A stretch of 64,000 bases of DNA, taken from the IMG/VR virus record IMGVR_UViG_3300009093_000034, positions 124,001-188,000 of that record; one strand, 5' to 3'. The translations under genes and the position numbers were made by a program. Of this stretch, positions 3,822-32,881 are shown in pieces. The notes below the pieces were generated by a model. That model was given only the letters and a program-made list of their open reading frames with translations. It searched no databases and was not told the origin of the DNA. Positions within the stretch are counted from its first letter, which is position 1, and every line of letters begins with the position of its first letter.

Positions 3822-3871
3822 GACAAAAAGTTTCTATTTGACTAATTACTTGAGATATTGATATTACACAA

Positions 3872-4022
3872 CAAATCGCGGTGGTTGTAACTCATACTTC
3901 GAACAAACTGTAAATTTGTCTATTGTAGGTGAGAATCCTACCGTCCCCACCAAACTTATTGTATACTACAGTCAGCTTGGTGGGGATGATGAAAAATCAG
4001 AGTTCCTAAATATTCCCGATTT
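3872..4022 (+). ncRNA. Circularly permuted tRNA-mimic RNA 1 (YrlA/Y-RNA-like) carrying a GUA anticodon-like arm
   Basis: T arm 3925-3941; acceptor 3942-3953 pairs with downstream 3977-3988; ends pair (AAATCG..GG / CC.CGATTT). Confidence 0.6.
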
Positions 4023-4027
4023 TATAC

Positions 4028-4101
4028 GCTACGTTAGCTCATGTAGGTAGAGCAGCTGATTTGTAACCAGCAGGCGAAGGGTGCAAGTCCTTTACGTAGC
4101 A
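4028..4101 (+). tRNA. tRNA-Thr(TGT)
   Basis: Cloverleaf, acceptor GCTACGT/ACGTAGC, loop TT-TGT-AA; no CCA. Confidence 0.85.
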
Positions 4102-4104
4102 TCA

Positions 4105-4460
4105 TTCTTTCTCTTTACCCGAAAGAGACTGGACCGAAAGGGTAGTTGGATAGCGGCGGTAGTTTTGAGGAGTTTCTTACTTCTCTGAAAGAACAATCCG
4201 TCCTTGAACAGCCTCCAACGAAGTAAGAAAGGGTCACGTTCGACTTATCCGGAGCGTGAATCTAAATGGTCTATGACCAGGGGATTAAAAGCACCGGAGG
4301 TTGGGAAGCAGCCAAGAATCAGTACTCGGTGGGCGGGAGTGGCCAAAACTGATTCATTCGTAGCGACGGGAAGATCGATTTCATCTTCTCCACCACAAGG
4401 CATCTTGATGAGATCTCTTGTGGGGGAAAATAAAGATCGAGACTCATTAGTTTCCTACAA
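4105..4460 (+). ncRNA. Large orphan structured RNA
   Basis: Helices 4173-4183/4220-4230, 4212-4216/4296-4300 (pseudoknot), 4316-4323/4348-4355, 4393-4399/4417-4423; no credible ORF. Confidence 0.55.
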
Positions 4461-4463
4461 CAT

Positions 4464-4548: not shown

Positions 4549-4551
4549 GAA

Positions 4552-4890
4552 AAATCCAACCGATACAGGTCGATCGGAAATGGTGTACGTACCTAGTTTG
4601 CGCTAGGATCGCAATGCGGGACTTCAAACCTGTTTGAGTGGTGAATCATAACCCTCAAGTTGGAATTCATTTTCCTTCTTCGAAGATTCACGCCGAAAGG
4701 TAAAACCGCTCAATTTTTTGAAATAAGGACAATTCCTATGCTAACCCCTTAGATAAGGGAAGGCAGAAAGAATCGGTGAGGTGTTTTGATAGTACTCTTG
4801 GGACCACGGGTGTTCACTCAAAAGAGGCTAACAATGGGAAAAGAACAATTGTCATCTAACATCTACTAGATGAGTTCTTAGTACCAATGT
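4552..4890 (+). ncRNA. Large orphan structured RNA
   Basis: 4555-4560/4659-4664 crossing 4641-4647/4685-4691; 4841-4858/4867-4879; no ORF. Confidence 0.5.
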
Positions 4891-4896
4891 TTTAAC

Positions 4897-4979
4897 GGGT
4901 AGGTGTCTCGAGCGGCAAAGAGGGCGGACTGTAAATCCGTTGCGTTAACGCTTCGTGGGTTCGAGTCCCACCCTGCCCA
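4897..4979 (+). tRNA. tRNA-Tyr(GTA)
   Basis: Canonical type II cloverleaf, loop CT-GTA-AA. Confidence 0.9.
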
Positions 4980-5089
4980 TAAACACGGGCCGAAAGGCGG
5001 TCAAGCTCAAGCGTGTCTAAAAATCTTGAGTAGCAGGTTGGCTATGCTTCGTAAGGAACCAACTAGGGCAGACGCCGAAAAGGTCGAAC

Positions 5090-5176
5090 GGGAGTTGTCT
5101 CCGTCACCTGACTGTAAATCAGGCGTGACAAAACGGACGGAATAGATCACAAGTGGAGCATTACCACCAACTCTCA
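5090..5176 (+). ncRNA. D-armless tRNA-like RNA with GUA anticodon arm
   Basis: 8-bp acceptor GGGAGTTG/CAACTCTC, CCTGA-CTGTAAA-TCAGG arm, T-like arm GTGG-AGCATTA-CCAC. Confidence 0.55.
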
Positions 5177-5339
5177 TAAATCTTTTCTGTTAGCGCGCGT
5201 GTTGATGGAAGAGTCGCTTTTGATGTGTAGGCATAGGTTCACCCTCTGTGCCATGCAGAAAGAGAAATGAAATTCTGTTATTGGAGCCGAGATTTACCGG
5301 TGAGCTTTGGTAACGCTGGATGGAGTAACCAGCAAACAT

Positions 5340-5421
5340 GGTGGTCGTGGAGAAATGGTAGCCTCGCTAGATTGTGGATCTGGTGCTTAATCGCGTGCGG
5401 GTTCGAGCCCCGTCGACCACC
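5340..5421 (+). tRNA. tRNA-His(GTG), unusually long variable region
   Basis: G-1:C73, loop TT-GTG-GA, 13-nt variable region. Confidence 0.85.
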
Positions 5422-5458
5422 CTTTGATGGAATCACTAATTTGTAAGAGGTGATTGCT

Positions 5459-7805: not shown

Positions 7806-8273
7806 ATGGAACAACTATCAGAATCCTTAGGCGTCGGCTTCTACAGAGTAGGTCGAATCACCATCCCAGTAAGAATGGCATCACATGCCACAGATCGCCT
7901 GGAACAAAGGTTTCCTGGTGTTGAGATCTCCCAAGTTAAAGAGATATTGAATAAGGGTGTTCAGCAGATCGCCCAACCAAGTGGTCACGTTGAACTTGGG
8001 CAATATTTGATCATCGATCAAAATGATGGTGTGATGTTGCCTATCAAGATTCAGAAGAATGATCGACCTGGGTATGAGAGACAAACCATGGGATTCATCC
8101 CAACGGTTATGGATTGGAAACTTCAATCAGACTCTGATTACCCTGAAGATCTCTTAGACAAGTACCACTTCTTGAAGAAGATCTACGTAGAAAGTGCTTC
8201 ACGATGGGAGGTTCCCAATCTGTCGAAGACAGGAACCTTTAATGGAGAACCTTGTACCATCATCTACGTCTAA
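7806..8273 (+). CDS. Hypothetical protein
   Basis: 155-aa ORF in operon. Confidence 0.6.
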   Translation: MEQLSESLGVGFYRVGRITIPVRMASHATDRLEQRFPGVEISQVKEILNKGVQQIAQPSGHVELGQYLIIDQNDGVMLPIKIQKNDRPGYERQTMGFIPTVMDWKLQSDSDYPEDLLDKYHFLKKIYVESASRWEVPNLSKTGTFNGEPCTIIYV

Positions 8274-8284
8274 AGGAATTTGAC

Positions 8285-9196
8285 ATGAGTGACACCTTAA
8301 CACTAGAGATCCTAGTCGGTGCCCCTGCTTCTGGTAAGTCCACTTACGCAGAAGAAAAACTAAAGACTGAGAAGAACTGGGTGAGGATCAACAAAGATAC
8401 CTTGAGAACCCAACTTCGTCAGGCCAAGAAAGATTTTACCGAGCGTGAGCTCAACAGTATTGAAGACATTCACATTGAGGCTGCGCTCAAAGCGGGATCA
8501 AGCGTGATCGTTGACGACACCAACTTGAATCCTTTCCATGTCAAAGATCGTCTACGACCTTTGGGACGGAAGTACGGAGCCAGAGTTCTTGTTAACACTG
8601 AGTTTCTTAAGGTTCCTGTGGAAGAACTGATTTCTCGAGACAAGAGACGAAAGAACTCTGTTGGTGCAGATGTCATCAACGACATGGTCGACAGGTTCTA
8701 TGCTACTTGGCTTAGGAACGCCACTCCTTGGTTGGATACAATCAAGGAAAACAAAGAGAAGACTCCTGTTTATCTCTTTGACTTGGACGGTACCTTGGCC
8801 TTCGCTACAGAGCGAGGTTGGTACGAGGACAAGTTGGCAGGAACGGACACTCCTAACATTCCTGTCATGGGAATCTTGAAGAGTCTTCTTCGCTCTGTGA
8901 GAGTCATCTTTGTTTCTGGTCGAGAAGATAAGTCTTGGCAAGTCACGTGGGATTGGCTCATTAAGCACAGTGAAGTAGGTTTTGACACGTGGGATTCTGG
9001 TCAACCTATGCTCTTGATGAGAAAGACGGGTGACGAGCGTTCTGATGACGTAGTCAAGGCTGAGATCTATAACGAGCAGATCAAGGACAACTTCAATGTT
9101 CTTGGGATCTTCGATGATCGACCTAAGGTCGTTCGAATGTGGAAGTCTCTTGGCTTGTTTGTGTTCGATTGTTACCAATCTGACCAAGAGTTCTAA
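8285..9196 (+). CDS. pseT: Polynucleotide 5'-kinase/3'-phosphatase (T4 PseT-like)
   Basis: P-loop GAPASGKST, RINKDTLR, HAD motif FDLDGT, FDDRPKVV. Confidence 0.93.
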   Translation: MSDTLTLEILVGAPASGKSTYAEEKLKTEKNWVRINKDTLRTQLRQAKKDFTERELNSIEDIHIEAALKAGSSVIVDDTNLNPFHVKDRLRPLGRKYGARVLVNTEFLKVPVEELISRDKRRKNSVGADVINDMVDRFYATWLRNATPWLDTIKENKEKTPVYLFDLDGTLAFATERGWYEDKLAGTDTPNIPVMGILKSLLRSVRVIFVSGREDKSWQVTWDWLIKHSEVGFDTWDSGQPMLLMRKTGDERSDDVVKAEIYNEQIKDNFNVLGIFDDRPKVVRMWKSLGLFVFDCYQSDQEF

Positions 9197-21631: not shown

Positions 21632-22273
21632 ATGATAGAGTATCCATCAATCATCAACAGCTCAAAAGCACCTCGTCAATCGATGATTGCGTTTGAGAAG
21701 TTGGACGGGAGTAACATCCGAGTCAAGTACACAGCTAAGAGAGGATTTGATCTCTTCGGAAGTCGAACTCAACTATTGGATGAAACTCATCCGATTCTTG
21801 GTGGTGTAGTCAAAGTCTTCAACGAGACCTGTAAGGAAGCGTTGGAAGAGTACTTCAGGAAGTACTACTCAAAGGAACGAGAGATCGAAGTCTTCGGAGA
21901 GTACGTCGGGCCTAACTCGTTTGCAGGCTTCCACTCGGATCCTGTTGACAAGATGAAGTTCGTGCTGTTTGACGTTATGATGATCCGTAAGGGTTATAAT
22001 GAGTTCTTGCTTCCGCAGGAGTTCATCAAGCTAGCGGAGCGTAACGCATCAGTTCCAGTCCCTAGAGTGATCTACGAAGGTAATCTTACCGACGATTTCA
22101 TCTCAAGAGTCCGTGCTGACGAGTTTGGAACATTCGAAGGTGTGGTCTGTAAGGGAAAGCAAGGACTCGGTTCTTTCCGAGGGAAAGTTTGGATGTGCAA
22201 GATCAAAACGAATGCATATCTAGAACTTCTCAAAGAAAAGAAAGGCGCAGACTGGGTTAAGTTTGCAGAGTAA
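21632..22273 (+). CDS. RNA ligase (Rnl2-like nucleotidyltransferase)
   Basis: Motif I EKLDGSNIR, FGE, FDV, EGVVCK, CKIK; RBS AAGGAG. Confidence 0.85.
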   Translation: MIEYPSIINSSKAPRQSMIAFEKLDGSNIRVKYTAKRGFDLFGSRTQLLDETHPILGGVVKVFNETCKEALEEYFRKYYSKEREIEVFGEYVGPNSFAGFHSDPVDKMKFVLFDVMMIRKGYNEFLLPQEFIKLAERNASVPVPRVIYEGNLTDDFISRVRADEFGTFEGVVCKGKQGLGSFRGKVWMCKIKTNAYLELLKEKKGADWVKFAE

Positions 22274-31936: not shown

Positions 31937-32881
31937 ATGCGTAAAGACGTCCTCTTGTCTCGCGACGCCTTCCGCAAGGCTGTCTTTGATCGAGACCACA
32001 ACACATGCGTATTCTGTTCTCTTCCTGCAGTAGATGCTCACCACATCATGGAGCGAAAGCTCTGGCCTGATGGTGGCTACTATTTGAACAATGGTGCCTC
32101 CGTCTGCGAACAGCATCACTGGGATTGTGAGAACTCCATCATCTCTGTTGAACAAGTCAGAAAGGCTTGTAACATCATCGACATCATTCTTCCTCCTTAC
32201 TTTTCTGAGAATCAAATCTACGATAAGTGGGGAAATCAGAAGCTCACGACTGAAGAAGCCGGAGCTATCAAGTACCCTAGAACTTATCACTTCCCTTGGT
32301 CCCAAAATCTCATCAACGACGATCGAATGTTGGAGTCTACTTCTCAGTTCGAACTCAACCACGTGATCGCTACGGTCAAGATGGATGGTGAAAACACGAC
32401 CATGACTAGAGATGCTTGTCACGCAAGGTCTCTTGATAGTGGAGCTCATCCTTCTAGAACTTGGGTCAGATCTTTTTGGGGTTCTCTCAAACACAACATT
32501 CCAGAAGGTTGGAGAGTTTGTGGAGAAAATCTTTACGCAAAACACTCAATCCTTTATACTGATCTCACCAGCTATTTCCAAGGCTTATCAATCTGGAATG
32601 ACAAGAACATTTGTCTGTCCTGGAAAGAGACCAAAGAATGGTTTGAACTTCTTGGCATTCAACCTGTCCAAGAGATCTACGATGGCATGTACTACGAAAA
32701 AGGCATCAAGGATCTTTGGGACCCAACAAAAGGTTGGGAAGGCTACGTAGTTCGGTTCGCAGAGGAATTTCCTATGAGAGATTTCAATCTCAAGGTAGGA
32801 AAGTTTGTTAGAAAAGGCCATGTTCAAACTGATGAACATTGGATGCAACAAGCTCTGACACCTAATAAACTCCAGGCCTAA
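31937..32881 (+). CDS. HNH endonuclease-RNA ligase fusion
   Basis: N-term CVFC..DAHHI..LCxxHH; C-term KYPRTYHFPWS, VKMDGENTT, CGENLY, EGYVVR, KFVR. Confidence 0.85.
   Translation: MRKDVLLSRDAFRKAVFDRDHNTCVFCSLPAVDAHHIMERKLWPDGGYYLNNGASVCEQHHWDCENSIISVEQVRKACNIIDIILPPYFSENQIYDKWGNQKLTTEEAGAIKYPRTYHFPWSQNLINDDRMLESTSQFELNHVIATVKMDGENTTMTRDACHARSLDSGAHPSRTWVRSFWGSLKHNIPEGWRVCGENLYAKHSILYTDLTSYFQGLSIWNDKNICLSWKETKEWFELLGIQPVQEIYDGMYYEKGIKDLWDPTKGWEGYVVRFAEEFPMRDFNLKVGKFVRKGHVQTDEHWMQQALTPNKLQA

Follow-up and report, generated by a model that had tools for sequence, protein, structure and literature searches.

Is the 87-base sequence at positions 5090–5176 (+) of this phage DNA a genuine tRNA-like gene, and if so, what kind of RNA does it encode? 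The window analysed is a stretch of 64,000 nucleotides, bases 124,001–188,000 of a 305,833-bp IMG/VR virus record with direct terminal repeats, that is, a complete jumbo phage, probably from a rhizosphere metagenome. A preliminary description, made from the sequence alone, had proposed that the element is a D-armless tRNA-like RNA carrying the third GUA anticodon loop within 1.3 kb, and that the presence of the same CUGUAAA loop on three different scaffolds suggests selection for the loop itself, for example as a decoy. The observation was confirmed by the present analysis, and the interpretation was only partly supported. The element belongs to a large, apparently undescribed family of predicted phage tyrosine tRNAs that have no D-arm and that, in most of the large tRNA arrays that carry them, are the only tRNA-Tyr candidate.

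Genomic setting

ARAGORN finds 50 tRNA genes in the genome (G000), all on the + strand and all between about 89 and 160 kb; 20 of them lie in the window. The element lies on the same strand between a canonical tRNA-Tyr and a tRNA-His(GUG). The tRNA island also encodes a T4-type polynucleotide kinase (PNK) at 8252–9196 (+) (phrog_505, E 8e-72). There are three ORFs with an RNA_ligase domain (PF09414) in the genome, two of them in the window at about 21683–22174 and 32360–32806 (+), and the third at G000:222952–223494. Together with PNK, the two in the island look like a tRNA-repair toolkit. A search for RtcB in this genome found none. A search for Rnl1 also returned nothing, though the control was silent as well.

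Structure of the element

The sequence reads as had been described, with an 8-bp acceptor (one G-U pair), an elongated helix (helix X), an anticodon hairpin and a 4-bp T-like arm. The RNAfold minimum free energy structure reproduces these helices (−28.3 kcal/mol, z = −2.83; 3 of 200 shuffled sequences fold as well). A fifth helix, V, had been missed. The parts of the element and its surroundings are as follows.

5090–5097 (+): acceptor stem, 5' strand (GGGAGUUG), 8 bp with 5168–5175
5098–5099 (+): two-nucleotide connector (UC here; UU in 64 of 70 relatives)
5100–5105 (+): helix X, 5' strand (UCCGUC), in the place of the D-arm, pairing with 5136–5141
5107–5123 (+): anticodon arm CCUGA-CUGUAAA-UCAGG, with the anticodon GUA at 5114–5116
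5125–5128 (+): helix V, 5' strand (GUGA), at the position of a class II variable arm, pairing with 5147–5150
5129–5135 (+): A-rich connector (CAAAACG) between the 5' strand of V and the 3' strand of X
5136–5141 (+): helix X, 3' strand (GACGGA), inside the loop of helix V
5142–5146 (+): linker AUAGA between the 3' strands of X and V, lacking the GG found in relatives with a canonical T loop
5147–5150 (+): helix V, 3' strand (UCAC)
5153–5167 (+): T-like arm GUGG-AGCAUUA-CCAC, with a 4-bp stem and a non-canonical 7-nt loop
5168–5176 (+): acceptor stem, 3' strand (CAACUCUC), plus the discriminator A at 5176; no CCA is encoded (UAA follows)
4897–4979 (+): canonical class II tRNA-Tyr(GUA), 111 nt upstream (ARAGORN; Rfam 48.6 bits), a partner gene and not part of the element
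5087–5334 (+): 248-nt segment, the element plus 158 nt downstream, absent at this locus in a related phage

The element does not fit the canonical cloverleaf. ARAGORN makes no call, and the Rfam tRNA model RF00005 gives no hit even at E ≤ 10 on a 151-nt slice. Only 9 nt separate the acceptor from the anticodon stem, leaving no D-arm hairpin, and the acceptor is 8 bp rather than 7, the T stem 4 bp rather than 5, and the T loop AGCAUUA rather than UUCRANY. The element does have a 5-bp anticodon stem, a 7-nt loop with U33 and a purine at 37, and a discriminator base. The tRNA-Sec model (RF01852; 13-bp branch, 6-bp D stem, UCA anticodon) gives no hit to it. Rfam hits to human lncRNA families at E of about 1–4 are chance matches. 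The possibility of an intron-containing or permuted canonical tRNA was considered by eye, and no excision or permutation restores a cloverleaf.

CTGTAAA occurs at 3908, 4929 and 5112 on the + strand, each in a hairpin loop. However, the bare heptamer is not enriched in the window (12 matches against 9.4 expected), and the case therefore rests on structure and conservation and not on heptamer count.

A family of relatives in phage and metagenome contigs

A scan of IMG/VR for the 17-nt anticodon arm returned mostly ordinary tRNA-Tyr genes, but two loci (L072 and L113; L numbers denote loci found in these scans) had the same unusual layout with entirely different, yet complementary, helix X sequences. 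A more specific pattern found further members in viral contigs, 19 metagenome stretches and two contigs of metagenome-assembled genomes (MAGs). Relaxing the anticodon stem gave at least 113 matches, of which 86 showed both 8-bp acceptor closure and a 5-bp anticodon stem. Altogether, 70 distinct sequences were collected. A covariance model (R2) scores 68 of these matches at 49–100 bits, including the window's copy at 75.1 bits (E 8e-17); the other two matches are paralogues without a GUA anticodon (42.0 and 38.6 bits). All segments of the window's copy – acceptor, 2-nt connector, helix X, anticodon arm, helix V, A/U-rich connector, 4-bp T stem and A73 – align in that order with the 70 members. 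The family was found with patterns that contain CTGTAAA, so its restriction to tyrosine is partly a search bias, although the other tRNAs in the same arrays are canonical.

Standard tools miss the family. ARAGORN called one member out of 118 loci, and a typical member, in L180, receives only a sub-threshold tRNA-Sec hit (25.8 bits against a gathering score of 47). Within the window's genome, R2 and a second model of the family (R1) find one copy only, the other hits being ordinary tRNAs at E of about 0.1 or more.

The specific pattern hit only 2 of 185,579 species genomes, which does not favour a bacterial origin. Both hits are MAG contigs carrying a sequence identical to L140, and R2 found nothing in 150 other genomes of the phylum of one of those MAGs. 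One of the contigs, the 53-kb G008:C47, looks phage-like: it has a tail protein, 15 tRNAs and an RtcB-type tRNA ligase (phrog_1075, E 5e-57; L164:9304–10830, − strand) between two tRNA clusters. This contig is binned in a "Bifidobacterium" MAG while an identical element sits in a "Verrucomicrobia" MAG, so at least one of the two binnings is doubtful. Searches for related phages anchored on the 361-aa neighbouring protein and on PNK found no relatives. BLAST of the 1.8-kb region against isolate phages matched only through the canonical tRNA-Tyr, and a common family member gave no match at all; no cultured phage with the fold was identified, though BLAST is weak for an 86-nt query.

Covariation and architecture

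On the 70-row alignment, 93.2% of pair cells are standard pairs, against 70.5% after shuffling. Twenty-three of 28 pairs show double (compensatory) changes. None of 500 shuffles reaches any observed measure, and sliding the 3' partners by 1–3 columns drops pairing to 41–52%; chance structure was rejected on this basis and on a smaller set. All five helices covary. The acceptor is 99.1% paired, with double changes in 6 of 8 pairs, and all 6 pairs of helix X and all 5 pairs of the anticodon stem covary.

Helix V forms between the nucleotides just 3' of the anticodon stem and those just 5' of the T stem. It is GUGA/UCAC in the window and GUCGC/GCGAC, GUCU/AGAC, GACA/UGUC, GAGUA/UACUC or GCC/GGC elsewhere, and RNAalifold predicts it on a MAFFT alignment that was not fitted to any structure. 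V sits exactly where a class II variable arm sits. Its loop holds an A/U-rich run (mostly 7–9 nt, 88% A+U) followed by the 3' strand of helix X, so X and V cross as a pseudoknot in the predicted structure. The two cannot both stack coaxially with the short connectors seen, and they could be alternative conformations.

The topology proposed here is inferred. X would replace the D stem in the stack on the anticodon stem, but with swapped strand connectivity: the acceptor enters the strand equivalent to positions 22–25 through two nucleotides, and the partner strand comes from the variable region. X (6 bp) plus the anticodon stem (5 bp) roughly matches the D stem plus the 26–44 layer plus the anticodon stem of a normal tRNA, and the 8-bp acceptor stacked on the 4-bp T stem would keep the usual 12-bp branch that EF-Tu reads. 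A further correlation supports a tRNA-like elbow. GG in the short linker between the 3' strands of X and V goes with a canonical UUC T loop (55 members with both, 11 with neither, 4 discordant), as expected if the GG stands in for G18G19 docking on the T loop. This correlation is partly phylogenetic, but at least three non-UUC lineages are involved: the AGCRUUA subtype, L219 and L183.

Genomic context of the family

In the 118 loci holding a member, the nearest ARAGORN tRNA is a median 13 nt away (64 within 20 nt), and it is on the same strand in 104 of the 104 cases that have a neighbouring tRNA. In the 43 loci with at least ten tRNAs, a separate canonical tRNA-Tyr is present in only 3, while every other amino acid is represented in 20–35 of them; some of these loci are duplicates of one contig. 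In L180 and L275 the element sits between tRNA-Asn and tRNA-Trp with spacers under 10 nt. In G008:C47 it heads an array, 11 nt from tRNA-Asp, and none of the 15 tRNAs is a tRNA-Tyr. The roughly 90%-complete 62-kb phage G002 has the element as its only tRNA-like gene. No associated protein gene is shared between the neighbourhoods examined.

The 8/4 division of the acceptor branch is found throughout the family, the discriminator is A73 in 69 of 70 members, and CCA is encoded in 47 of 70. No TyrRS was found in the four phage records searched, so charging would rely on the host enzyme. A73, the G34/U35 anticodon and the long variable arm are the TyrRS determinants of bacterial tRNA-Tyr, and all three, or a surrogate, are kept here.

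The fold is not tied to GUA. A search for it with other anticodons, which had been proposed as a check, came back positive: L132:7970–8054 (+), about 380 nt from that phage's Tyr-type copy, has the same acceptor, X, V and T layout with the anticodon UCU (Arg) and discriminator G, on a contig with no canonical tRNA-Arg(UCU). The other paralogue, L205:727–826 (−), has a 19-nt loop where the 7-nt anticodon loop should be and sits directly next to that phage's Tyr-type copy. Further odd tRNA-like stretches lie next to family members at L132:7660–7790 (+) and L205 ~640–700 (−), with an acceptor-like closure and a canonical T arm but an over-long or missing middle part.

The copy in the window

The window's copy belongs to a rarer subtype with a CUGG/GUGG-AGCRUUA-CCAG/CCAC T arm, whose AGCRUUA loop is conserved in L134, L135, L140–L142, L144, L150 and L152. 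The first T-stem pair is itself compensated (G-C here, C-G in the others), and the linker lacks GG. This subtype is the only Tyr candidate in its own arrays (L140, L144/L149 and G008:C47), so the T loop is a conserved variant and not decay. The window's copy is unusual in that CCA is not encoded, position 10 is C, and a canonical tRNA-Tyr lies upstream. Both kinds also occur together in a minority of other loci: L072, L212, L238 and L252, and L226 and L239, which carry the same element as L212.

Contigs from other metagenomes independently confirm the gene boundaries. In a mine metagenome (run X3), one contig matches only 5090–5178, with 10 substitutions and 1 insertion, and has unrelated flanks, while another joins 5086 directly to 5335. 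The element is therefore a discrete unit, kept at about 88% identity over 89 nt where its surroundings are unalignable, and gained or lost as part of the 248-nt segment. One substitution in this relative (C5138>U) keeps a G-U pair in X. Two substitutions in the 5' strand of V (5126 and 5128) have no visible compensating change among those of its differences that were compared. A contig of a relative in run X4 follows the window up to 5093 and then continues from 5094 with different sequence containing GGGAGU-CUGUAAA-ACUCU, another CUGUAAA hairpin at the same locus, which suggests turnover of Tyr-type genes here. The same phage occurs in a second sample (L145) at 99.99% identity (1 mismatch in 7,050 nt), with an identical element, and is uninformative for covariation. 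The one metatranscriptome run with a small share of the region gave contigs covering only 3990–4159 and foreign tRNA-Tyr fragments, and so no evidence either way for the element.

A predicted non-canonical tyrosine tRNA

The best reading, held with moderate confidence, is that 5090–5176 is a gene for a structurally non-canonical but functional tyrosine tRNA. The analysis itself establishes the presence and predicted stability of the fold, its 70 distinct relatives, the covariation of its helices, the tRNA-like sequence constraints and the position in tRNA arrays. The function – expression, processing, charging with tyrosine and decoding – is inferred from this comparative evidence, which strongly implies it. 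In this view the RNA would be transcribed with the phage tRNA array, trimmed by host RNase P and 3' processing enzymes, given CCA by the host enzyme in the case of this copy, charged by host TyrRS through A73, the GUA anticodon and the variable-arm helix, and used to read UAY codons. [quoted passage not shown] In this phage, given its atypical T loop and linker, the lack of encoded CCA and the neighbouring canonical gene, the copy could be redundant or specialised.

The description of the element as a D-armless tRNA-like RNA was right, but selection for the loop itself, for example as a decoy, is not what the comparative data show, since the whole tRNA body is preserved. A decoy or sponge would present a tRNA-Tyr anticodon arm, and perhaps a variable-arm mimic, to a host nuclease or sensor and titrate it without taking part in translation. 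This fits the targeting of tRNA-Tyr by Septu and retron-Eco7, the partial protection of host tRNA-Tyr by overexpressed phage tRNA-Tyr, the occurrence of a canonical tRNA-Tyr and two odd GUA-loop RNAs within 1.3 kb, and the lack of a canonical T loop and CCA in the window's copy. A decoy cannot be excluded for this copy but is unlikely, as it has no need for A73, a 12-bp branch or an encoded CCA, does not explain why the family member is the only tRNA-Tyr candidate in 40 of 43 large arrays, and does not fit the UCU form.

It is also doubtful that the window's copy is a decaying duplicate that lost its function after the phage acquired a canonical tRNA-Tyr. The nearby canonical gene, the missing CCA, the non-canonical T loop and the absence of the element at this locus in a relative are consistent with such a history, but all 27 base pairs of the five helices are intact, the T loop is conserved in a subtype that is the sole Tyr candidate in its arrays, and the element is conserved in run X3 despite unalignable flanks and is identical in a second sample. 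Least likely is a tRNA-shaped RNA with another job, such as a primer, a regulatory ligand, or a processing or punctuation signal in the array. The pseudoknotted core is unlike any characterised cytosolic tRNA and a terminator-like hairpin follows at 5182–5213, but the anticodon loop, A73 and CCA are conserved, the family fills the Tyr slot, and no protein gene is shared between neighbourhoods.

Why only tyrosine should be rebuilt is a matter of inference. In the arrays examined, ARAGORN calls ordinary tRNAs for the other amino acids, including the other class II species Ser and Leu. Septu PtuAB and retron-Eco7 abort phage infection by cutting tRNA-Tyr in the variable arm (C48/A49), depleting it, and phage tRNA-Tyr rescues infection; the tRNA-Tyr of T5 is described as resistant because of its variable loop (PMC13096335, PMC11555353). 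A tRNA-Tyr whose variable-arm loop is buried in helix X and whose D region is gone could escape such enzymes, and a role in conflict with these nucleases remains plausible, more likely as a cleavage-resistant tRNA than as a decoy. The repair enzymes in islands carrying the element (PNK and RNA-ligase ORFs here, RtcB in G008:C47) fit an arms race over tRNAs but do not prove it. A tentative further possibility, which the data do not exclude, is that phages have re-engineered the core of tRNA-Tyr, deleting the D-arm and pairing the variable-arm loop into a surrogate D stem, so that the tRNA still works with host TyrRS, EF-Tu and the ribosome while nucleases that recognise or cut the variable arm can no longer act on it. 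This would be counter-defence by tRNA re-architecture, and the first natural non-cloverleaf tRNA class used by bacterial translation.

Relation to known tRNAs

Literature searches found 8/4 tRNAs for Ser and His in phages (PMC5389517), mitochondrial D-armless tRNAs and engineered ones, but no natural D-armless or pseudoknotted tRNA, and no D-armless tRNA-Tyr, in bacteria or phages; most subscription journals were outside the search, and prior description remains possible. The mitochondrial D-armless tRNA-Ser(AGY/N) of mammals and nematodes also lack a D-arm hairpin, have a lengthened anticodon-side helix and often a non-canonical T loop, and still work as adaptors (PMC7609411, PMC4013460). They are organellar, have co-evolved factors, a 7-bp acceptor and an unpaired D-replacement loop, whereas here the D-replacement strand pairs with the variable-arm loop, the branch is 8/4 and the genes lie in phages of bacteria. 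The (8/4) irregular tRNAs and allo-tRNAs of bacteria and phages (Mukai et al. 2017, PMC5389517) share the 12-bp branch, split 8/4, and the occurrence in phage tRNA clusters, but they keep a D-arm and an ordinary, free long V-arm hairpin and have Ser, His, Cys or Sec identity, with no Tyr and no D-armless form described there. The tRNA-Tyr of phages T5 and T6, which act as counter-defence to retron-Eco7 and Septu PtuAB, are likewise phage-encoded in a tRNA-rich region, and variable-loop differences are reported to give resistance (PMC13096335, PMC11555353), but they are canonical cloverleaves, and any resistance of the present fold is hypothetical. The engineered D-armless "mini HisT" shows that bacterial EF-Tu, ribosome and a synthetase accept a D-armless adaptor, but it is artificial and has no X/V pseudoknot (PMC11551756).

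That study states that all known bacterial tRNAs are canonical. A common natural family of D-armless, pseudoknotted tRNAs that bacterial ribosomes must use during phage infection would overturn a statement of this kind. It would also explain apparently missing tRNA-Tyr genes in phage tRNA arrays, expose a blind spot in tRNAscan-type annotation, offer a naturally orthogonal-looking scaffold for genetic-code engineering, and give a concrete link between tRNA architecture and anti-phage tRNA nucleases.

Other unusual tRNA genes

A second aberrant GUA-anticodon tRNA-like gene, Y-like RNA 1 of the preliminary description, lies at 3881–3949 (+). The Rfam tRNA model scores it 28.0 bits (gathering score 29) with the D-arm region skipped. 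It has a short class I-type variable loop, a T arm GUAGG-UGAGAAU-CCUAC and two mismatches in the acceptor. A relative in run X3 carries a compensatory pair change in the T stem (3927 A>T with 3939 T>A), and a promoter-like site (3838–3865) lies just upstream.

What looks like another non-canonical tRNA-Tyr class was found at L079:3080–3172 (+) and in the match in L050 (reverse strand, near 1200–1216). It has an 8-bp acceptor, a 6-bp D stem with a 4-nt loop (Sec-like) and a GUA anticodon, and it lies in the tRNA-rich stretch of two complete ~100-kb phages (28 and 19 tRNAs called there) where ARAGORN calls no tRNA-Tyr.

In the window, tRNA-Thr, -Ser, -Tyr and -His start at 4028, 4463, 4897 and 5341, about 435 nt apart. 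The spacers of about 350 nt (4102–4462, 4550–4896 and 4980–5340) contain no convincing ORF and several GAAA-capped hairpins (ccGAAAgg). In the run X3 relative they differ by large indels: 4717 to 4979 is replaced by 591 other letters, and 5087–5334 is absent. The tRNA-His(GUG) at 5341–5422 (+) is 82 nt long with a roughly 10-nt insertion in the variable region, which is unusual for tRNA-His; a second tRNA-His, of normal length, lies at G000:109942–110015. A well-formed tRNA with the anticodon CUA lies at 35775–35849 (+) (Rfam 68.6 bits; labelled "Pyl" by ARAGORN) and is a candidate amber suppressor.
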